A stretch of DNA of 64,000 nucleotides from Rebecca billardiae RCC1528 (lineage: Eukaryota; Protista; Haptophyta): the NCBI GenBank assembly GCA_965240325.2, contig OZ251241.1:558001-622000 (forward strand). The letters run 5' to 3'. Positions 45,412 through 62,650 of this stretch are shown piece by piece. How positions within the stretch are numbered: the stretch's first letter is position 1; each line of letters starts with the position of its first letter. A program made the position numbers and the translations under genes. The notes beneath the pieces are model-generated. The model searched no databases. It had not been told where the DNA came from and was given only the letters and a program-made list of their open reading frames with translations.

Positions 45412-47151
45412 TATATTATTACTCGTCGTTGTTCACCTACTTCCTGAATTCCTCATCCCGATCCGAGTCCGACTCAGAAGTCAGTGTCAGATCCGGGCGC
45501 TGCGCCATCAGTGCGGGCGGCGTCACCACTTCTGTCGCCGCCGGCGGAACGTCTCCGCCGCCGGTCGGACCGGCGCTAGAAGTCGTAGATGAATTGCTGG
45601 CGCTATTGCTACTGCTAGATCCGAGTATCCGTCCGAGACGTGATGCGGCACCGTAATCCCGTGATGGGACATGAGTCTGGTCCGGCGGCGGCACTCGCCA
45701 ATCGCGATAGTTCGACACGCGGTGACTGCATGCTCTGATGATGATCGTCATCTGTATATTGAGTGACTGGCGGGCAGCAGAGTGACGACGACGCCCACCG
45801 CGCTGTCGTCCGTCTAGTGCCAAGCTCCCAAGAGTCGTCGGGCCTTTGACTCAATTCCCTTTGACGCGGGGCGCCGTGCGCACCGGCGCTGCAATAACTC
45901 GCCAACTCGGCATCGTCACGAGTCTGCACGGGCCTCGGCCGATTTGGTGAACCCAGCGGCGTGCACTGCCGCGAGCGTGCTGCCCGGGCTGACCTTGGAT
46001 TCGATGCCAGAGTGATAAGACATGACAATTCCATAGTCTGTGCTTGCCCTCCCCACCGTACCCGCGTACGCCGCGAGTGCCTCCGTACGAGTTCATGGCC
46101 GCGTAGAACGGCGCACCGTGCGGCGGGCGACGAGGCCGCACTCGTGAGCTGCATGCTGCATCCAGGCAACGCCTTGGACGCGTACCTGTGCTTCCTGAGA
46201 AGGCGGGCCTCACGCCTGGCTGCGCTGGTGTCGGTGGACGCCCTGAGCTTCACCGCAGCCAGCCCACCCTGGGCGTCGACAACCTTGTTTACAAACCGTG
46301 CCGTGCAGGAGCCCGCTCCCACAAGCTGCTCTCACAGTGAGCCGCAGCTGGGACATCCATCTGTTCGGCCTCCTCGCTGGGGAGCGTCAGGTCGAGCGCC
46401 GGAACTTCCGACTTGCGCGAGCCCAGCAGCCGGCCGAGCGGGCGCCCAGCCGCGCGCGCTCTCCCCCTCCGCGCGGCGCAGCGTGAATGAAGGCGGGCGC
46501 GCACGACGTTGATTGAGAAAGAGCTCCTCCTCCTGCACGCGCAGGCTCCACAGCACGAGCGCGCCCGATGCGAAGAGGAAAGCATCGAAGGGTGCGGGCA
46601 GCGGCGTGCTCGTCGCGCTCCCACTGAGAGCGCGACGTGGGCAACGTGAACGTCACGTGCCGACGGGCGTCGGTCAGACGACGTGGACGGGAGGCGAGCA
46701 GCGCGGCGGAGGAGACGTGGGTGCCAGTGAGCGTGCACGGCGCGGACGGCTCCCCGCCGCAGGGCGGCGTCGTGTGCTCGCCCGCCGGCCGCCCGTGCTC
46801 TAGGATCCTCAGAATCCTAAGAAGTCCGCCTCGCCGGGCCGCGTTGAGAGCCCCAACTGAAAACTCCCAAGGGGGGCTTCCAGGTCTTGCATCTGAAGAC
46901 CACGATCTCCGTCCGATCTTCGTTTAGTCTATTGGTGCGACGAAGCAGGAATATGATTTTCTTTTGTCCTCCGCGTGTCGATCTCGCCGGCTCGCAAGCC
47001 AAGCCTTTCAGAAACGCGGCGTGGTGAACGCGGTGCAAGTGCCGCGCCCAGTACTGGCTACTCGCCGCGGCCGGACTCTGACTCTCGCCCTCGGCGGAGT
47101 TCGGTTGTGCACCACTTGAACACTTCGGAGTGCGCGCCGAAGCCGCCAGTA

Positions 47152-47285
<134 letters not shown>

Positions 47286-47582
47286 GGACGATGAAACTGC
47301 TGTTACACTACTGGCTGTAGTACTCACTGCCAGACCGTGACTGAGTGTCAGAGTGTGCCACTACGCGACATAAATGACCGCGTTCCGCGGTCCTTTTCCG
47401 TAGAACGAACGCAGAATTCAGGGCCCGCGGTGGCGGTGCACCCTCCGTCGCAGTCGTCCATTGACAGACCCGGAGTTGCATGCCCGTACAACTAGACTCT
47501 CCACCAGCGGCGCGCCGCCGCCCGCCGCGCCGCGGGCGGGCCCATCGCACTTCGCAGCCGCCGGCGCGGCGCCGATTGTGTA

Positions 47583-51265: not shown

Positions 51266-51747
51266 GGCGGTATACTAACAATATATATTTACTGTAGCTA
51301 TGTGATGAGTGTATGTCGCCTGTCGGCGCTCAGTGGCAGCGGCGCGCGCCGACTGTTATACTACCAGTACCTTTTAGTCACTCGATCCGTCCGGTCCGCC
51401 CGGTCTCGGTAGTAGTCGGGCCTCTCGCGGGACCTGCGGGGGCGGCCCCTCCACCGCGCCGCCCTCCGCCGGCGGCCCCTCGGCCTCGGGCCCGGCGGGC
51501 CGCCGGCGCCGGGCTGGGTCAGGCTGGCAGCCGTGAATGGCGTGATGCGGCGCCGCGGCGCGCCGGCATCAGGCCTCCCATGAGGTCCTCAGGACCGTGT
51601 CCGTCACGGCGGAAAGCGTGGCTGCGTGGCGGCCGTGCCCGTGGCGCGACCCTCGGCCTCGCCTCGCGCGATCTGCGATGGCACCGCGTACGCTGGCAGC
51701 GTGAGCGCCACAAGCCTCAGGCAGCGATGCGCGATATCAGCAGCAGA

Positions 51748-53319
51748 TCATACCATCAGACGCCTCCAGCCGGCACGCGACGCCAGCAGCGGGTCGGTCT
51801 CGTCAACTGGTGGCTCCTCGTCCGAGAGCCCACACGTACGCAGAAGACGGCCCGTCGATTGGATCAGGCACATGACAGCCGCGTGCGCGAGCCCACGGAC
51901 GATGTGCACCGCCGCCGCCACCGCGCAGATGGCTGCGAGCAGCTGCGCGCGAGAGAAAGTGACCACCTCGTCGGTGGTGAGCACGTCCGTCGTGGCCCAG
52001 CGCAGCTCCACGTCGACGAGCCCGAGCAGCGCGCCGTCCGGTCGACTGTCGTACGAGAAGGGCGCGATCATCTGCGTGGCCGAAGTCGAGAGGACGAACG
52101 AGTCCACCGCACGTGCCGGGTCGGGCGCGCTCTCGGCGGCGGCCGTCTCAAGGCGACGACTGCGCTCCACGCGGGTGGGCTGCCCTGGGGCCACAGCCGC
52201 GTCTGGCGTGGTGCGCGTGTCGGTGGTGCTCTCTGGGCCGAGCAAGATCTCAAGCGCCGTCCCGAGCTGCGCGCCCAGCTTCGATAGCCGCAGCATGTGC
52301 TCGGGCGGGGCGCGTGACAGCCATCGCTCCTTGTGCAGGCGCACGGCCGTGCTGAACGAGGGCTGCAGCGCGCGCAGGCTGGGCGGCGGCACGGCTTCGC
52401 CACCGCGCCGAAAGGTCGACCACGCGTCGTCAGAGAGCAACCATAGGTCGACGCCCATGCTCGCAGGATCGAGCACGCCGGGATGCTCGCGGCTGGCCGG
52501 GGCGGCCCCAGGCATGCGCGCCTGCCCAGCCGGCACCGCGCCGCCTGTCACTCGCACCGTCAACGTGAGCGCCTCATAGGCCGTCGTGGGCCCGAGGGCC
52601 GACGGGGCACCGAGGCAGCTGAGATTGTGGGCATGGAAGGGCTCCATCAATAGAGCGCCGATCTCCGCGTCGGACGCGCCCTTGCAGCTGCGCTGCGCCC
52701 CGTCAGCGGCGGTGCGCTCGCACCGAACCAGCTCGAGCGCGTCGGCTGGCGCGTGCGGGCTGCAGAGCACCACATTTGGGAAGGCGAGCAATGGCGGGTG
52801 CGTGACGCGCACGTGCGTGGCCGGGTGCACGATCGCAAAGTTGTACGCGTCGATCAGAGACCCGACGAGGACGAGGGTGACGGCGAGCTGGGCGCAGAGC
52901 AGCAGCAGGCCCACCACCAGTGAGGTCAGCGCGCACGCAGGCGATGCCGACGTGCCAGCCGCTCGCGCTCCGCCGCGCGCTGCGGCGGGCACCGGTGGAG
53001 GTGGCGGCTGCACGGGTACGCGTACGGCGATGTCGCGCCGCGTGTCTGGCACGGCAGTCAGGAGCGGCGGAGCTGGTGATGGTCGCGGCCGAGCATCCGC
53101 CCGCGCCTCGCCCGTGCTCCAATGGTGGGCCCAGTCAGCCGAAGGCCAGCTGCTGTTGGAGAGCGTGCCGTCGTAGGTCGGCGAGCATTCGCCGCTGCAG
53201 GCGCCGCAGACTTTGGGGTCGTTTGCGGAAGGCCACTCGCGCGGCAGCGCGCGACGCCTTTGCCCTTTGGGCGTCCGGTCCAGGTCCAAGTAATTCCCGG
53301 CGCTCGCGCCGGACGCCAT
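51748..53319 (-). CDS. Two-TM membrane protein resembling the DEG/ENaC channel superfamily
   Basis: TM1, then YNFAIVHPATHVRVTHPPLLAFPNVVLCS (cf. FPAVTxCN). Large loop, then DVELRWATTDVLTTDEVVTFSRAQLLAAICAV (cf. pre-TM2/TM2). The 5' part may contain an intron. Confidence 0.65.
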   Translation of the reverse strand: MASGASAGNYLDLDRTPKGQRRRALPREWPSANDPKVCGACSGECSPTYDGTLSNSSWPSADWAHHWSTGEARADARPRPSPAPPLLTAVPDTRRDIAVRVPVQPPPPPVPAAARGGARAAGTSASPACALTSLVVGLLLLCAQLAVTLVLVGSLIDAYNFAIVHPATHVRVTHPPLLAFPNVVLCSPHAPADALELVRCERTAADGAQRSCKGASDAEIGALLMEPFHAHNLSCLGAPSALGPTTAYEALTLTVRVTGGAVPAGQARMPGAAPASREHPGVLDPASMGVDLWLLSDDAWSTFRRGGEAVPPPSLRALQPSFSTAVRLHKERWLSRAPPEHMLRLSKLGAQLGTALEILLGPESTTDTRTTPDAAVAPGQPTRVERSRRLETAAAESAPDPARAVDSFVLSTSATQMIAPFSYDSRPDGALLGLVDVELRWATTDVLTTDEVVTFSRAQLLAAICAVAAAVHIVRGLAHAAVMCLIQSTGRLLRTCGLSDEEPPVDETDPLLASRAGWRRLMV

Positions 53320-53414
53320 TGTGCTGCATTCCCGCTGCCGCCGGCCGCCGCCTCGCCGTTGAATCCGCTTCTTAAAAGAACTCAGCTGGCTTACTTTTAG
53401 TGAGCCACCGGCCG

Positions 53415-56184
53415 AGGCCACTCCACCGAAATCGGCCGCCGTCTGGCATCCCAGGTCGCACTGCGTCTGGGATCTTGATCAGATCGATGCCAGACGGCGT
53501 CTGGGGTCGTCTGGGATCGGTGCGCGCGGCACCGTGAGCGCGTTTCGCGAGCGTCTCTCGTGTCTGCGCGGGTGGCGCGCACTTTCGTCAGGTGCGCCCA
53601 ACCCATTCGACCTCGCGCGCCGCTGGCTTCGCGTCTCTCCGCCGCTCGAACCGCTCGCCATGGGCGCGCGACTGTGCTGTTGGCCTGTTTGCCGCCGAGG
53701 CCAGCTGCGAGCGCGCACTTGCGGGCACAAGCTCGGCTGACGGCGCGTTGCGGGTGCGCTGCGCGCGGATCATGCGCACGTGTTCCGCCTAGCCCCGACC
53801 GTCGGTCGCGCACGCGGAACACGGCCCACTTGAGCGCGCGCTCAAGCTGCCGCGAGTGCCATGCAGAGGCCGTGACGATGCCACCAGCGCGGGCGAGCCC
53901 ACGCGCCGGTAGTGCGCGCGCCGAGCTCGTGCGACGAGCTGTGAGGTCGTGAATGACCGTCCACTCCCGCCATGGACAGTCCGTGGCCTCGCCCGCGCCA
54001 GCAGCTCGAGGCAACGACGCGCCGCGCCGCCGCCACCCTTCCGGGGCGCAAGCTGGGCAGGAGTGCAGCCGTTGCAGCGGGCACGGGACGGCTGCGCGCC
54101 ACTCCGCGAGCACGAGGTCGGCGGCACGGGAGGCGTCGGTGGCGCGGGTCGATTGCGCACCATCGCCCCGGCTTCGGCCATCCTGCTGGCGTCACAGACA
54201 GCACACGAGCGCTGACCGTCGTGACACCGTAGTAGCTCAACCCCCGGCTCCGTTCTCAGTCAATGTGGCGCTCCTGCGATTGCAGCAGGCGCAGCCACTA
54301 CCGTAGGCATGGGCACTGTCATCAGAGCAGCTCCTAACCTGAGAGCGGCAGGTATGTCACATCAGCAGGCACTCGATCGTGAACCGCATCCAGATTGCGG
54401 GCACGGGCATCGTTGACGACGGCGAGAGGCGCTGGTTGCGTTGGTACCCACGTGCACTCTTGACAGCTGCGCTTGCTTGCGGCGCGCGCTAAGCAGTAAG
54501 TTGAATGGTGCCGCCTTGGCAGCCACTGGCTCAGCCTTGGTCTTGTGCAGGGCAGTCTTTGCCTTCGCTGCCGTGTGGCGAGAAGGTTGATTGTGTACGC
54601 CGCGTCGGGCTGTGCCTTTTCTTCACGCCCGGAGCGCAGCAGGCACTTGGCCCAGGGCTGCGCGGCCGGTGCTGTGCATGCGCCCGCACCAGTGATCGCG
54701 ATACTCTCGGTACGGCAGGTGGCGCTGAGCCTGGAGGGCGCAGCGGCGGCGCGTTCATTTGATACCGGGACTTCCAGCGGCCGCGACACATCGAGCGCAG
54801 GCGGCTACGCAAAGACCGTAAGCCATCGATGCCGCGTCCAAGGCGCGCGAGGCGGTCGGCTGGCAGCGGCTGCGAGAGCGCACCATGCCGTGATACACGA
54901 AGCGTTGTCGCCGCCGTGGTGCCAATGACGCCGTTCACTAGTGTGCCATCGCCGCACCGTCGTAGTCAGGGGCAGCAAAACAAGGCTGATGAGAGCTCTG
55001 GCTCATGAGATCAAAGGCTCAACCATAGGGCGCGAGCGCAATGTAGCACAGCCTTTGCTGCTCCAGGCCTTCCTGCGCGCAGTAGCCATCGCAGCAGGTG
55101 TCGATCAAGTCTGCCAAGCGCTCGCGTGCCGCTGCTCGCGTGCTTGCGGATGCTCACGTCTTGCATCGGTGAGCGGGTGCTCCGTCACATCACACCGTCG
55201 CTGCTTGCGCGTGGCGCACGCAGCCAGCCCGTACCAAACACGCGTGCACGATCAAATTGCACGCATGAACACAATCAGCTTGAGCATCTCAGTGGCAAGT
55301 CACTCGCGACAGCCCCAAACAAGGGCGTCAGCGCTGCCTGGCGCGTGATTGAGCTACCAGCACCAACCTGACAGCTTCTACGGTATCACGACGGTCAGCG
55401 CTCGTGTGCTGTCTGTGACGCCAGCAGGATGGCCGAAGCCGGGGCGATGGTGCGCAATCGACCCGCGCCACCGACGCCTCCCGTGCCGCCGACCTCGTGC
55501 TCGCGGAGTGGCGCGCAGCCGTCCCGTGCCCGCTGCAACGGCTGCACTCCTGCCCAGCTTGCGCCCCGGAAGGGTGGCGGCGGCGCGGCGCGTCGTTGCC
55601 TCGAGCTGCTGGCGCGGGCGAGGCCACGGACTGTCCATGGCGGGAGTGGACGGTCATTCACGACCTCACAGCTCGTCGCACGAGCTCGGCGCGCGCACTA
55701 CCGGCGCGTGGGCTCGCCCGCGCTGGTGGCATCGTCACGGCCTCTGCATGGCACTCGCGGCAGCTTGAGCGCGCGCTCAAGTGGGCCGTGTTCCGCGTGC
55801 GCGACCGACGGTCGGGGCTAGGCGGAACACGTGCGCATGATCCGCGCGCAGCGCACCCGCAACGCGCCGTCAGCCGAGCTTGTGCCCGCAAGTGCGCGCT
55901 CGCAGCTGGCCTCGGCGGCAAACAGGCCAACAGCACAGTCGCGCGCCCATGGCGAGCGGTTCGAGCGGCGGAGAGACGCGAAGCCAGCGGCGCGCGAGGT
56001 CGAATGGGTTGGGCGCACCTGACGAAAGTGCGCGCCACCCGCGCAGACACGAGAGACGCTCGCGAAACGCGCTCACGGTGCCGCGCGCACCGATCCCAGA
56101 CGACCCCAGACGCCGTCTGGCATCGATCCCAGACGCAGTGCGACCTGGGATGCCAGACGGCGGCCGATTTCGGTGGAGTGGCCT
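53415..56184. mobile_element. 2.8-kb foldback element with ~820-bp near-identical TIRs (53415-54237 / 55373-56184)
   Basis: The arms are reverse complements apart from an 11-bp indel and a few substitutions; the ORF track shows identical mirrored ORFs. CCGGCCG direct repeat at 53408-53414 and 56185-56191. Confidence 0.92.
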
Positions 56185-56330
56185 CCGGCCGGAAGGATGG
56201 TCGAGCTACTCACAATGACAGTTAGTCCAGTAGCGCTCGCGCCTTGCACGAGCTCGACGGGCGGGCGGTCGAAGGCCTTGGAGCTGCCCACCTTTGCTCG
56301 CGCGCTCGACATTCGCGTAGGCCGCGAGGC

Positions 56331-59300
56331 ATGCCTCACACGTCGGCGGTCGCGACTACGATGCTGGGCACTAGGCGCACAAAGCAAGCCTCGCGCCGAA
56401 ACTTGTCGTTCGGCGAGAAAGGCTCCGTGAATCCCGCGAGCCTGCGCTACCCGGAGGTGGCGGAGGATGAGACGCTCGTGCCCGTGCGCAAGGTGCTGCA
56501 CGACTTCGAGCAGCGCGAGGGCGCGCGCGGCTTCATCACGTACACGATCTTCTTCGCCATCTACTTTGCACTCAACGCCTACCGCTTCGACGCGAGCGAG
56601 GGCCGCCGCACCATCACCTGGTTCAACGAGGCGCTCAAATCGCAGTACGACCTGGTCGCTGACGAGACGAACGGCTGGTGCGCGTGGGACGCCGGCGGGC
56701 TCGAGTGCTACGAGCCGTACCTCGAGCGCGCGGACATCGACGGCCTCGAGCACTTCCTCGAGTCCGACCTCACCCAGGTCGTCTCCGGCATCCTCGAGTA
56801 CTGCGACGAGTGCCTGATCGGGATGAGCGAGGTCTCCAAGGACCTGCGCGACACGCCGCTCTCGCAGTTCCTCTGCGTCGACTTCGAGACGCTCCCCGAG
56901 ACGGCGTTCGCCATCGGCGCGGGGAAGGCCACCTTCAGCAAGCGCGACTGCAAGAAGGTGGACGACGACTTCAAGTCCTCGCCCTCGCCGCTCGAGGCGC
57001 CGTGCTGCCACGACGCGTCCGTGCGGTACGCGTCACAGGCCCTGATGGCCACCTTCGAGACGCAGGGCGAGTGGGCGGCGGTGAAGGGGCTGACGTACGC
57101 CGATCTGCAGCCGAGCAAGAGAACGCGCAAAGCGTTGAAGGACTACACCGCCCGCGCGCTCGAGAACGACGCGAACAAGAACACGCTCATCCAGATTGTG
57201 ATCTTGCGCGGCGGCCACGCTACCGGCATCGTGCGCGCGGCCGCGCAGAGCGCGCGTGCGCGCGCGCGCCCGCGCAGCGCGCCCCCGTGGGCGCGCGGCG
57301 CTGATTCCGGGCGTGCGCGCGTGCATGCGCCGTGCGCGCGCGCAGGTCTTTGGCGGCACCTTCGCCGACCGGAAGTTCCTCAAGGAGCGCGTCGAGCCGC
57401 ACGTGCGCTTCTGGTCTTACTTTTACGACGACGGCTCTGTCGACGAGATCATGCTGGCGTGCATGATGGGCACGTGGATCCTGTCGCTCGTGCACGAGCT
57501 GCTCGAGATCTGGAGCAGCGCGTACCGGCCGGGCAGCCTGCTGTCGGCGGTGCTGCGCCCGTTCATGCTCTTCATCGAGTGGCCCTCCATCATCGCGCCC
57601 ATCCTGCTCGAGGCCACGCACACCGCGGTCGAGCTGGGCGACTACGTGTTCCTGGTATCGATGCTTGAGCTGCTCATGTTCATGCGCGTCTTCCAGGAGG
57701 GGCAGGTCGTGCCGCCGTTCGCGCTGATCGGTGCGCGCGGCGCGCGCGCCGGCGCCGCCCCGGCTTGCGCGCGCTCACGCGCTCCCTCTCGCTCGCGCGC
57801 CCGCCGCTCGCGCGCGCCCGCTCGCGGCCTTGGCGATCGCGCCGCGCGCTCTGCTGATCTGCACGGGCGGCAGTGCGCACGCTCATCAACGCGGGCAAGC
57901 AGCTCGTCATGTTCACGATCGCGATGGGCGCGTCCGTGCTCGTGCTCGCGTCGATCAACATGCAGCTCTTCGGCAACTTCCACGACGGGTACGCCGACCT
58001 CGGCGACGCGCTCACCTCGCTCTTCACCTCGGGCATGATCACCGGGCAGGAGTTGGACGACGATTTGATTTCGTACGCGCACCCGGAGGCGACCGCGATG
58101 CACTTTGTCGTCAACCTGTTTCTCTTCCTGATCCTCGCGCAGTTCTTCATCGCGATCCTGGTGGGCGCGTTCGACTCGACGCGCGAGGCGGAGGAGGAGC
58201 GGCGGCAGGACCGCGCGCTGCCCGAGGGCTTCAAACGGCGGCACCGCCCGCCGCCGCTGAGCGCGTGCGCGCACGTGCTCCGTGAACTGCGCTACCTCTG
58301 CACGTACCACACGCGGCCCGAGCTGTTCGTGCCGCGCGTGGTGCGCGGGCTCAAGGCGGTGGTGGACGAGGCGGACGCGCGCGCACAGGTGCTGGCGGAC
58401 GCGCTCGACCGCAAGTTCGAGCCGCAGCCGCTGATGGTCACGCGCTCGCAGCTCGAGCCGCAGCTCGGCGAGGCCGTGAGCGCGCTGCTGCTTGAGTGGT
58501 ACGGCGCCGTGTGCACGCGCGAGCTGAGGGACGCGCGCCACTTGCTAATGCTCGCGCTCGAGGGCGAGCCGGGGGCGGAGCCGGTGCCGGCGCTGGAGGA
58601 GGACGAGGAGTGGCGCGCGCACGCCCGGCTCACAAAGGGCCGCGGCGAGTCCATCGGCACGCAGACCGACTTCACCCTGGCCGACGCGCGCTACGCCGCC
58701 GCCGCCGGCCCGGGTGGCATCAGCGCCGACTGCGAGCTGCTGGCGCTGAGCGCGTCGGTGCGAGCGGACGCGCCGCGCGGCAGAGCGGAGCGCTCTCCGG
58801 CGGGCGCCGACGGGCTGGGCAGGGACGCGCCCAAGGGGGCAGCCGCACGGCCGCACGCCCAGGGCGACCAATACCCGGCCGAGCCCGCGCACGCCGCCTC
58901 GGCCGGGCCGGCTCGCAACGGCGGCGCGGCAGCGGACAGGGCAGCCACCAAATCGCCCGTAGACGGCGGCCCGCCTGGGGCGGCCGCGCGCGCCGACGGC
59001 GGCGAGCATGGCGCCGATCCGCCCTCGCGGCCGTCGCGGGGGAGCGAGCCTGTGCGCGATTGGGCGGACGTCCCCGCTCGCAACGACCGCTCGCACCTGC
59101 CGCCCATCGAGCAGCAGGAGCCAGCCGCTGCGCGCGCGCCCACGCCGCCCGAGTACGCGCGCGCCAACGGCCACGGCGGCGCTGACACGCCGCAGCCGTC
59201 GGGCGCCGAGAGGCACCAGCCAATCGGCGCCTCGCCACCGGGGAGCGTCCGCCCTGCGGAACACGGCGCGGCCGAGCGCGCAGGCAGTCCTCCCAGTGAG

Positions 59301-59435
59301 AGCCGGCGGCGTGAGCCGCGCGAGCCCGTCGTTCGCGTCCAGGTTGCGCGGCGAAGCGGCAGCGGCGCCGGCAGCGCCAGTCACGCCGGAACGTACCCTT
59401 ACGGCGGGCAGCACTGGTCGACATCATCACGGTGA
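56331..59435 (+). CDS. Polycystin-2/TRPP-like cation channel; exons 56331-57230, 57346-57730, 57874-59435
   Basis: S1 GFITYTIFFAIYF; long Cys-rich S1-S2 loop; S5-pore-S6 VRTLINAGKQLVMF..LFG..YADLGDALTSLF..LFLILAQFFIAILVGAF; low-complexity tail. Confidence 0.85.
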
Positions 59436-60050: not shown

Positions 60051-60107
60051 TCCTCTTAGACAATCATCAGTTATTGTGCCAATAACCCCATATATATATA
60101 TATATAG

Positions 60108-60145
<38 letters not shown>

Positions 60146-60345
60146 TCTGAGACCTGACGCTTATTGCCCGCGTTGCTAATACGGTTATACGCGGCCACGT
60201 GATCGTCGTCGTCGTTATTAATAAATATATACTCGGCGGCGGATCGATCCGGACGCCCGAACTACGTACTGCTGTCTATATCTCTCATCTCTCTCTCCCT
60301 CTCTCTCTCTCTTAATATACTGCTACTGCTATATAGCTATAGCAG
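60051..60345. repeat. Composite repeat: inverted copy of the 28.5-kb hairpin repeat, (TA)n, a MITE-TIR remnant and (CT)n
   Basis: 60051-60100 matches 28551-28587. CTTATTGCCCGCG at 60160-60172 matches the 23.3-kb MITE TIR. Confidence 0.7.
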
Positions 60346-60731: not shown

Positions 60732-62650
60732 TCACAACGGCTCGAGGTCGATGTACCTGAACTCGGGGTACTTGGAGCGGATGAGCGCCTCCAGCCTGTC
60801 CACCTCGAGGCCGAGCATCAGGTAGAGGTGCTGGCTGCACCGCCGCGTCACGCGCCGCGCGTCTGCGTCCGTCTCGACCGCGGAGAGCGAGACGCGCATG
60901 TCCTGCAGGTTCGTGTGCAGCGCTGGTGCACGCACGGCGGAGCGCAGGCGGGCGCGAGCCGAGGCGCACGGTACCCGTGAGCGCGCGACGCGCAGACCGG
61001 CTGGGTGAGCGGCAGCGCGCCGCGGTGCCGCGGCCCGCGCGCGCCGCCGGCCGGCCGGCGGGCTTGGGGCATTGTGCCGCGCGCGCGCGCGCGCACCCAA
61101 GTAGCGGTCCGCGATGGCGACGGCGTTGAAGTGCACCTCCGCCTTGAAGCGCGCGACGCCGGGCGAGACCATCACGCTCTTCACGTCGTGCAGCGAGAGC
61201 ACCGCCGGGTCCGCGCGCAGCAGCGACTGCACCTCGTGCGTGCGCTTGGGCGCGATCGCCTGCCCAATCAGAACCTCGCGATTCTTCTGCACAATCATCC
61301 ACGCGACGCCGCCGAGCATGCCCGAGATGACGAGCGAGCCCGCCGCGTCCCACCGCGGGTCGCCTGTCGCCACCGAGAGCGCCATTGCGCTGATCGCCAC
61401 CCCGATCCCCGCGACCGCCGCGCTGTCCTCGAGGAACACGCCCACGTTGAGCGGGTCGGGTGCGTACCGGATATAGTGCCACGTGCGCATGCCAGACTTG
61501 GCCGCCTCGCGCCTGATCTCGTGCAGCGCGACGAGCATGGAGTAGCCGTCGAGCAGCCCGGCGAGCGCCAGCGTGCCCAGCCCCACGCCCAGGTTGTGCA
61601 GCGGCTCCGGGTGCATCAGCGCCTGGATCCCGTGGTACGACGTCACCCCGCAGCCGAGGAAGAAGATCCCCACGCCCGACATGAGCGACCACACAAACTG
61701 CTCGTTCGCATACCCGTACGGGTGCTTCTGGTCCGCCTCGCGCTGGGAGCGCTCGAGGCCGATGAAGAGGAGCAGCTGGGCGCGGGGCGGGGACCCGCCG
61801 CATGCATGCATGCGCGCGCGGCGCGCGCGGTGCGTGCGAGAGCGGCGGCGCTCAGCGCACAAGCCGTGCGGATGGGCTGGATGGTCCGCCGCGCCCAGCG
61901 GCGGGCCAACGCGCGCCGCGCGCGCGGTGGCGCGGCGCACACCTGGTTGAAGAAGTCGGCGACCGAGTGCACGGCCTCGGCGAACATGGCGCCCGAGCCC
62001 GTCGCGAGGAACGCCCCGCCCTTCGCCACCGCGATGATGGCGTTGCACACGAGCGCCGAGTACACGGCGTTGGCGCCGGTCGGCACCGGCGTGTTTGCGC
62101 GCTTGAGCCGCATGCCGATGAAGTACCGCTGCCGGCCGTGGAGCCGTCTTCTGCGCGTGCGCTCGCGCTGCTCCTTCACGCTCGCGATCGTGTCCATCGA
62201 GCCCCACTTCCCCAGGGCCGCGCGCACCACGTCCATCCGGAAGTAGAGCGGCATCGTCGCCGCAGACGCGTATGGGCTCGCCTTGAGCAGGTGCGGGAGG
62301 GAGGCGAGGTCGCGTATGCCGAGCATGTACTGCGTGCGCGCCTCCTGCTGCGTGAGCGTCTGCGCCTCGCGCCAAAACGTCACCGACGCCTTGTCGCCCG
62401 TGCCCAGCCGCTGCTCGAGGTAGCCCTGGTGCGTCTTCCAGCGCAGCACGTCGAGCACGCGCGCCGGAGGCGTCCACTCCTTCCACGCGCTCAGCTCGGC
62501 GGCGGGGGGCGAGGTGCACAGCGAAGCCCTCGGGCCGCTACTCCGCGGTGCGTACGGTAATGGCGCACCGGCGAGCGTCCAGCGCGTCGCGCACCATGCC
62601 GCGCCGCGCACGGGGAGCGCTCGCGCGCCGATCCCCACGGGATGCGCCAT
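60732..62650 (-). CDS. ZnT9/SLC30A9-like cation diffusion facilitator; exons 62650-61943, 61775-61097, 60922-60732
   Basis: N-terminal XPA-like segment (EARTQYML..SPY..LYF..ALGKWGS), SGAMFAEAVHSVADFFNQ|LLL..HPYGY, VFLEDSAAV, FKAEVHFN, EVDRLE..YIDLE. Confidence 0.93.

Follow-up and report, generated by a model that had tools for sequence, protein, structure and literature searches.

Does mirror-image DNA upstream of two divergent membrane-protein genes mean that the two are controlled together? The question is raised by positions 51748-59435 of a 64,000-nt segment of Rebecca billardiae RCC1528 (GCA_965240325.2, contig OZ251241.1, 558,001-622,000, forward strand; the whole segment is referred to below as the window), in which one gene runs leftward from an ATG at 53319 (minus strand) and another rightward from an ATG at 56331 (plus strand), with a long inverted repeat between them. 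The initial annotation took the genes for DEG/ENaC-like and TRPP-like channels, and proposed a co-regulated sensory channel module under symmetric, transposon-derived control. Its description of the locus is borne out: both start codons are backed by the N-termini of homologues, both frames have a coding-type GC content, and the mirror sequence, given as ~820 bp within ~95-150 bp of each ATG, proves to be a pair of arms of 824 and 813 nt lying 94 and 145 bp away. We regard another account of the arrangement as likely, namely that two unrelated channel-type genes (the plus-strand gene of group II TRP type, the minus-strand gene of ENaC/ASIC/PAC type) diverge from a common spacer into which a young foldback transposon has inserted, without any evolved pairing. 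The arrangement is ordinary, being a chance neighbourhood combined with an ordinary young insertion, and only the minus-strand family merits further work.

The spacer between the two start codons comprises the following features, none of which is assigned to a strand:

53320-53413, left half of the spacer, 94 bp from the minus-strand ATG to the transposon (read from the sequence)
53409-53413, left copy of CGGCC, the 5-bp target-site duplication (read from the sequence)
53414-54237, left arm of the foldback, starting GAGGCC, with a subterminal hairpin and 11 extra bases at 53471-53481
54238-55372, loop of the foldback, 1135 nt, unique, without recognisable protein domain
55373-56185, right arm of the foldback, ending GGCCTC
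56186-56190, right copy of CGGCC, the 5-bp target-site duplication (read from the sequence)
56186-56330, right half of the spacer, 145 bp from the transposon to the plus-strand ATG (read from the sequence)

The element is a non-coding DNA transposon of the foldback kind; its ends are GAG...CTC, and the target, CGGCC, is duplicated over 5 bp. A search for repeats gives two inverted pairs, both perfect (53482-54237/55373-56128, 756 nt, 100%; 53414-53474/56125-56185, 61 nt, 100%), which our own alignment merges into a single pair of arms (824/813 nt) whose sole difference is the 11-nt indel at 53471-53481; a subterminal hairpin is present in each arm. The flank is nearly palindromic, such that the inverted repeat could be read a few bases longer; the direct CGGCC duplication stands regardless. 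Because the arms are near-identical, the insertion must be young. The element has the long terminal inverted repeats and target-site duplication of a foldback and no transposase gene, its ORFs (open reading frames) give no credible Pfam match, and no second copy lies within the 64-kb window. As in FB and Galileo-type foldbacks, long inverted arms make up most of the element around a short unique middle without coding capacity; the subterminal hairpin, the target-site duplication and the insertion directly 5' of genes are likewise shared with foldback DNA transposons, from which the element shows no unusual difference. The same foldback family occurs in another data set. A single public run shares words with the stretch (6% share) and yielded four tiny contigs, three of which align at 99-100% with the left arm (53604-53754, 53957-54180) and with the loop (54952-55102); of the flanking genes, the contigs of this run contain only a 75-nt piece, with seven differences, at 58123-58197, and none of them spans a junction. 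Elsewhere in the window, a second inverted-repeat structure (10129-10347/11069-11287, 219 nt, 95%; 10357-10422/11008-11073, 66 nt, 92%) is probably an older foldback-type element.

Once the element and one CGGCC copy are taken out, the start codons come to lie ~234 bp apart. The two genes would thus originally have been divergent neighbours, an ordinary arrangement in a compact genome, before the non-coding foldback (arms ~820 bp, loop 1135 bp) was, on this account, recently inserted into their spacer with duplication of the 5-bp CGGCC. Any foldback placed between divergent genes shows both of them the same sequence in the same relative orientation, which accounts for the mirror-image upstream DNA: the symmetry is geometry, needs no selection, and is not evolved symmetric control. 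The transposon-derived symmetric control proposed by the initial annotation is thus unsupported, as a single young foldback, bordered by its target-site duplication, yields the symmetry automatically. Transcript contigs of homologues (L003 and L007) extend 48-56 nt ahead of their start codons; given such leaders and an element that begins 94 and 145 bp from the two ATGs, the insertion most likely cut through the core of a promoter common to both genes, the position of which we infer from these distances. If anything, the insertion would have moved the two halves of that promoter 2.8 kb apart. The locus is in this respect a clean natural experiment, in which strains with and without the insertion would reveal the effect of a 2.8-kb foldback on a ~234-bp shared promoter.

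The plus-strand gene is split into at least three exons rather than forming a single ORF, as read from the three frames and the splice sites:

56331-57230, plus strand, exon 1: cytosolic N-terminus, S1 and a ~210-residue outer loop (L003 35% identity, E 1e-42; third-position GC 0.93)
57346-57730, plus strand, exon 2: S2-S4, with only one arginine in S4 (GT/AG borders; L003 E 2e-11; third-position GC 0.945)
57874-59435 (stop), plus strand, exon 3: S4-S5 linker, S5, acidic pore loop, S6, a conserved cytosolic module to ~58508 and a low-complexity tail (Ion_trans E 3.8e-4; P0001; 3' structure predicted)

The third-position GC of these exons is of coding type in the conserved parts (0.93-0.955), and the final ~300 codons are low-complexity and unconserved. 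The ATG is supported by N-terminal residues shared with L003 and P0013; across the joint of exons 1 and 2 there are 37 residues in the window model and likewise in P0013 (transcript-derived, 781 aa), and the joint of exons 2 and 3 matches the P0001 sequence PPF.LI.RTL.NA. Homologues are few, comprising P0001 (E 1e-19, 47% identical in the pore region), P0002 and L003, a transcript contig with matches to exons 1 (35%, 1e-42), 2 and 3 in that order. The JGI transcript contigs L003, L010 and L011 have a common 5' part and a frame break at ~864, through which the MMETSP protein P0013 reads to give its 781 aa; the break likely stems from a frameshift in the assembly or from an alternative isoform.

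By resemblance, the plus-strand gene encodes a putative six-helix cation channel of the polycystin/mucolipin (group II TRP) type, a reading that draws on weak profile matches and language-model features obtained exon by exon, the joined protein having been neither searched nor folded. Ion_trans is matched by exon 3 (E 3.8e-4) and by P0001, P0013 and P0016 (3e-5 to 6e-5), at 20-24 bits against a Pfam gathering score of 25 bits; PKD_channel is matched by P0001, P0016 and P0013 (E 1.3e-3 to 3.4e-3, with 1.3e-3 for the full-length homologue), at 17.3-18.6 bits against a gathering score of 22.4 bits, and gave no match on the window exons in the Pfam scan. A profile of S2-S6 compared with the PDB returned mucolipin-2 (0.0017), bacterial sodium-channel pores (0.002), mucolipin-3 (0.008), PKD2L1 (0.39) and polycystin-2 (2.2), and the pore domain aligns to NavMs-type and mucolipin chains. 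The six-helix layout with a pore loop between S5 and S6 is apparent from the sub-threshold Ion_trans match, the pore alignments and the hydrophobic segments. Exon 1 encodes one hydrophobic helix followed by ~210 residues, of which 8 cysteines are conserved in the homologue, and by language-model features (Atlas) its nearest clusters carry Polycystin_dom (0.94; 15/30 hits) and MCLN_ECD.

In common with group II TRP channels (polycystin-2/PKD2L1 and the mucolipins), the plus-strand protein has six helices, a long cysteine-rich outer loop between S1 and S2, an acidic pore loop and an S4 without the arginine ladder of a voltage sensor, and it would probably assemble as a tetrameric cation channel. 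The TRPP and TRPML types are indistinguishable for this gene, and membership of either family by curated thresholds is not reached. Unlike group II TRP channels, the small plus-gene family has a specific C-terminal module (DR.LP.GF ... SQL...G). This module follows S6 on the cytosolic side (window 58200-58508, plus strand; ~540-640 in P0013) and reads DR.LP.GF, then SQL...G......L..YG; it has no Pfam match, and could be a family-specific gating or assembly domain.

The minus-strand gene is a single exon encoding a protein with two membrane helices around a large outer domain, the layout of DEG/ENaC channels, as seen from hydropathy and from the model:

51748-53319, minus strand, whole gene, 523 aa, single exon, stop 51748-51750 (ORF, codon-position GC periodicity, homologues)
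52828-52941, minus strand, membrane helix 1, residues ~127-164 (hydropathy, model, alignment)
51955-52827, minus strand, beta-rich outer domain, ~290 residues, in which four cysteines are conserved and a low-complexity insert occurs (models, fold searches, alignment)
51835-51954, minus strand, membrane helix 2, residues ~456-495 (alignment, model helix 457-495)

Third-position GC of this ORF is 0.83, with a periodicity that is clear from ~residue 140 onward and less marked in the N-terminal part; the ATG is supported because the N-terminus is shared with P0009 (YLDL.R.P). The hydropathy peaks (residues 134-164 and 456-478) fall on the model helices (127-164 and 457-495). Two long ORFs (324 and 317 aa) lie antisense to the gene (51313-52579, plus strand); their codon-position GC is unfit for coding, and they are taken to be by-products of the high GC content.

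Pfam, a single-sequence search of the PDB and a word-index protein search all returned nothing for the minus-strand protein, and an exhaustive sequence search of 1.84 billion representatives was therefore used. It gave seven hits, six of them real and one low-complexity noise; the real relatives are P0004 (the best, at 40% identity and 4.5e-44), P0005, P0007 and P0009, together with the fragments P0006 and P0008. Scans of metagenomes for further loci of the family produced pattern matches and no confirmed relative. In this small algal family, helix 1 is conserved and followed by the block Y..A..PA.....V.....L.FP..V.C[NS]...P...L....C (mean column identity 55%); the outer domain has the further blocks C[IL]G.PS..GP...Y..L...RV and WL[LM], and ~15 residues ahead of helix 2 stands a strand LRW.[ST]TDV. 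In or around that helix, F...QL, an alanine and a closing arginine are conserved, and its region has 14 invariant columns and a mean identity of 50%. The string FP..V.C[NS], ~20 residues after helix 1, is one that we presume to recall the post-M1 motif of DEG/ENaC, and is taken as a lead only; a literature search for the motif returned nothing relevant. Searched against the PDB, the profile of the post-helix-1 block found only chance cyclin matches and no ENaC/ASIC chain, and the profile of the whole family found no ENaC, ASIC or PAC chain. In DEG/ENaC channels, helix 1 is preceded by an HG motif and helix 2 contains a G/S-x-S selectivity filter. Neither HG before helix 1 nor G-x-S in helix 2 is present in the alignments of the minus family; the H-P-G that precedes helix 1 in two members does not constitute the HG motif.

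The case for a channel fold comes from structure prediction, for which the minus-strand protein was modelled as a monomer, at full length and then as the outer domain by itself. The full-length model (mean predicted local distance difference test, pLDDT, 50) consists of two long helices with a beta-rich domain in between. Foldseek found no significant match for it, the first rows being BRTNaC1, ASOR/PAC and ASIC, and a shape search of the ESM Atlas gave meaningless bacterial rows. An exhaustive structural aligner, which names Z 8 as its background level, returned mostly helical hairpins lying on the two long helices, and the only rows on the outer domain were ENaC, FaNaC and ENaC (Z 7.1-7.8). 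Because helical hairpins swamped this search, the outer domain was refolded alone, from a nine-row alignment that includes translated pieces of L006 and L007 (mean pLDDT 49, core near 70), and compared by the same aligner with 48,161 representative chains. Only 15 of these reached Z 5 or above, and 11 of the 12 best are ENaC, FaNaC, ASIC, PAC, PDPNaC1 or BRTNaC1 (Z 5.0-7.6):

ENaC 9blr_A, Z 7.6, 127 residues at 4.1 A
FaNaC 7yvb_A, Z 7.4
ENaC 6wth_B, Z 7.4
ENaC 6bqn_B, Z 6.4
ASIC1 6ave_A, Z 6.4
ASIC5 9mky_C, Z 6.3
PAC 7ji3_A, Z 5.7
PDPNaC1, Z 5.5
PAC 8fbl_A, Z 5.4
FaNaC1, Z 5.2
BRTNaC1, Z 5.0

The alignments to these channels cover 122-147 residues, from model residue ~20 to ~290, that is, from just past helix 1 to just before helix 2. 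Among unrelated rows, Tke5 stands at Z 5.5 and the others, mostly immunoglobulin-like, from Z 4.9 down. In a second comparison, limited to Foldseek's best 1000 chains, the top 17 rows are all ASIC, PAC, ENaC or FaNaC (Z 5.6-6.8). Foldseek itself places BRTNaC1 first for the outer-domain model (E 0.042, probability 0.77), with ASOR and FaNaC also in the top rows. By language-model features, PAC/TMEM206 clusters come first for the minus-strand protein (0.92, 196/256 features shared), although only three of the 10 best named hits agree. A family-specific ranking by two aligners is hard to obtain by chance. On these low-confidence models, we lean towards an ENaC/ASIC/PAC-type fold for the minus-strand protein, and with a little less assurance towards channel function; the outer domain would most likely have as its core the palm and beta-ball that are found in trimeric channels of the ENaC/ASIC/PAC kind, and the product would probably form a ligand-, proton- or force-gated pore.

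With DEG/ENaC/ASIC channels the minus-strand protein shares two membrane helices, intracellular ends and a large outer domain containing cysteines, and the modelled core, in a low-confidence model, superimposes best on human ENaC (9blr_A, 6wth_B), FaNaC and ASIC1 (Z 6.4-6.8). Unlike these channels, it lacks a match to ASC (PF00858), the HG motif and the G-x-S filter, and its outer domain of ~290 residues has little by way of a helical finger or thumb. With PAC/ASOR (TMEM206, PF15122) it shares, as judged from a monomer model, the two-helix layout of a trimer-type channel and a small, mostly-beta outer domain, as well as a conserved basic residue at the inner end of helix 2; the low-confidence model aligns over 131-144 residues to PAC residues 108-297 (Z 5.2-6.2), at 14-17% identity save for one entry. 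It differs from PAC/ASOR in having no match to the TMEM206 profile or to a PDB sequence, a longer N-terminus (~130 residues) and a larger outer domain with a low-complexity insert; in addition, the PAC clusters among the Atlas hits are all chordate. Were the minus family a relative of ENaC/ASIC/PAC, it would form a separate branch. We put forward only tentatively that the gene belongs to a hitherto unnamed and deeply diverged branch of the trimeric ENaC/ASIC/PAC superfamily in GC-rich marine algae, invisible to sequence profiles. Since the animal selectivity and gating motifs are absent, the protein may have its own ion selectivity and stimulus.

The ENaC/ASIC/PAC architecture has so far been found in animals, PAC in vertebrates, and in a few protists recovered through PF00858. 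If the fold is confirmed, this channel architecture would extend to algae through a family that homology searches have missed, and it would stand well outside animals and their close relatives, which bears on the open question of DEG/ENaC origin. The non-animal DEG/ENaC homologues of heterokonts and Tunicaraptor were collected by means of PF00858 (PMC10507113), which the minus family does not match; for the origin of these channels, gene loss has been weighed against lateral transfer (PMC10507113).

Whether the two genes form a module can be asked of their relatives, and for the minus-strand gene the neighbourhood is readable in three of these (L004, L012 and L013). On L004, which carries the closest relative, P0004, the immediate upstream neighbour, in head-to-head orientation, is a dual-specificity phosphatase (DSPc), 93 bp away from the called start at 2115, or ~40 bp from an upstream in-frame ATG. 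On L012 and L013, which come from two different samples and represent the other subfamily, a Gtr1/RagA GTPase lies upstream in tandem. A TRP-like gene is upstream of the minus relative in none of the three contexts, no contig of either the plus or the minus family carries a member of the other, and tblastx of all the relatives' contigs against the window revealed no shared neighbours. The contigs of the plus family are uninformative on linkage because they are transcripts or are cut before exon 1. Functional pairing of the two channel genes is thus unsupported and partly contradicted, by three contexts in which orthology is unproven. Concerning the tandem GTPase itself, gene and two-helix member are on the same strand and 86-159 bp apart (L012, 2-1144 and 1230-3494; L013, 3-923 and 1082-3181); the L012 pair is on one transcript-like contig, and the order is either a conserved neighbourhood or a read-through transcript in that subfamily.

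A co-regulated sensory module, driven symmetrically by the sequence of the transposon arms, is improbable. The genes are head to head with an original spacer of ~234 bp, which makes a shared bidirectional promoter plausible; both products resemble sensory-type channels; and arm ends 94-145 bp from the ATGs, taken with the 48-56 nt leaders of L003 and L007, place the element probably at or just upstream of the promoters. Against this, the upstream neighbours differ in the three relatives, the arms are essentially identical and the insertion hence too recent to have evolved into a control element, and the symmetry would accompany any foldback. Linkage in relatives had been set in advance by the initial annotation as one of the tests that could refute the module, and the pair is indeed unlinked in all three readable contexts; the context-bearing relatives are, however, only 29-40% identical and may be paralogues, so that loss of linkage is not proven for true orthologues. 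An origin of the palindrome in faulty assembly is very improbable. Chimeric long reads can produce long, perfect inverted repeats, but here the flank is directly duplicated over 5 bp, the ends are defined (GAG...CTC), the arms differ by 11 nt and the loop of 1135 nt is unique, all of which indicates a real element, and one arm and the loop are matched by short contigs from another run.

For the minus-strand protein, the alternative is a two-pass surface glycoprotein serving as a receptor or in adhesion, not a channel, whose beta-sandwich-like outer domain would resemble the ENaC/PAC palm only superficially. This is unlikely, and several results speak for it and weigh against the channel-type reading that we prefer. 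Neither ASC nor TMEM206 is matched by the protein or by any family member (hmmscan, seven family members, E up to 10), and no sequence profile ties the family to either; both models are poor (pLDDT 50 and 49, from 7-9 sequences) and rest on one alignment, hence are not independent; all Z scores are below 8 and no Foldseek E-value is significant; the alignments contain no G-x-S filter or HG motif; and the PAC family accounts for only 3/10 of the best Atlas feature hits. In contrast, the structural matches are specific to one family, with immunoglobulin-like folds appearing only below Z 5.2; the aligned stretch begins with the first strand past helix 1 and closes with the last strand ahead of helix 2, as it does in the channels; and few parts of the family are as well conserved as the region of helix 2 (14 invariant columns), as is typical of a helix that does more than anchor. 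The plus-strand protein is subject to similar reservations, in that it scores below the Pfam gathering thresholds and its outer loop has no match in Pfam (including Polycystin_dom) or to a PDB sequence. The channel labels of the initial annotation are accordingly retained as resemblances, to TRPP-like profiles and features for the one protein and to DEG/ENaC/PAC-like folds in low-confidence models for the other, and neither protein passes a curated family threshold. Between two divergent, unrelated genes of probable channel type, parted by a young insertion, and a paired module, the relatives point to the former: a phosphatase or a Rag GTPase is found upstream, and never a TRP-like gene.

Beyond the plus-strand gene, and convergent to it, lies a gene for a CDF cation-efflux transporter (60735-62519, minus strand; PF01545, E 3e-20), which brings the membrane-transport genes to three within 11 kb. 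Long (AT)n microsatellites occur at 2755-2844, 47138-47309 and 60074-60179, in surrounding sequence of 65-75% GC; the last of these is within the AT-rich gap between the plus-strand gene and the CDF gene. At the other end of the window, a tandem repeat (953-1879) has a period of ~320 bp and three copies, two of which are identical over 235 nt.

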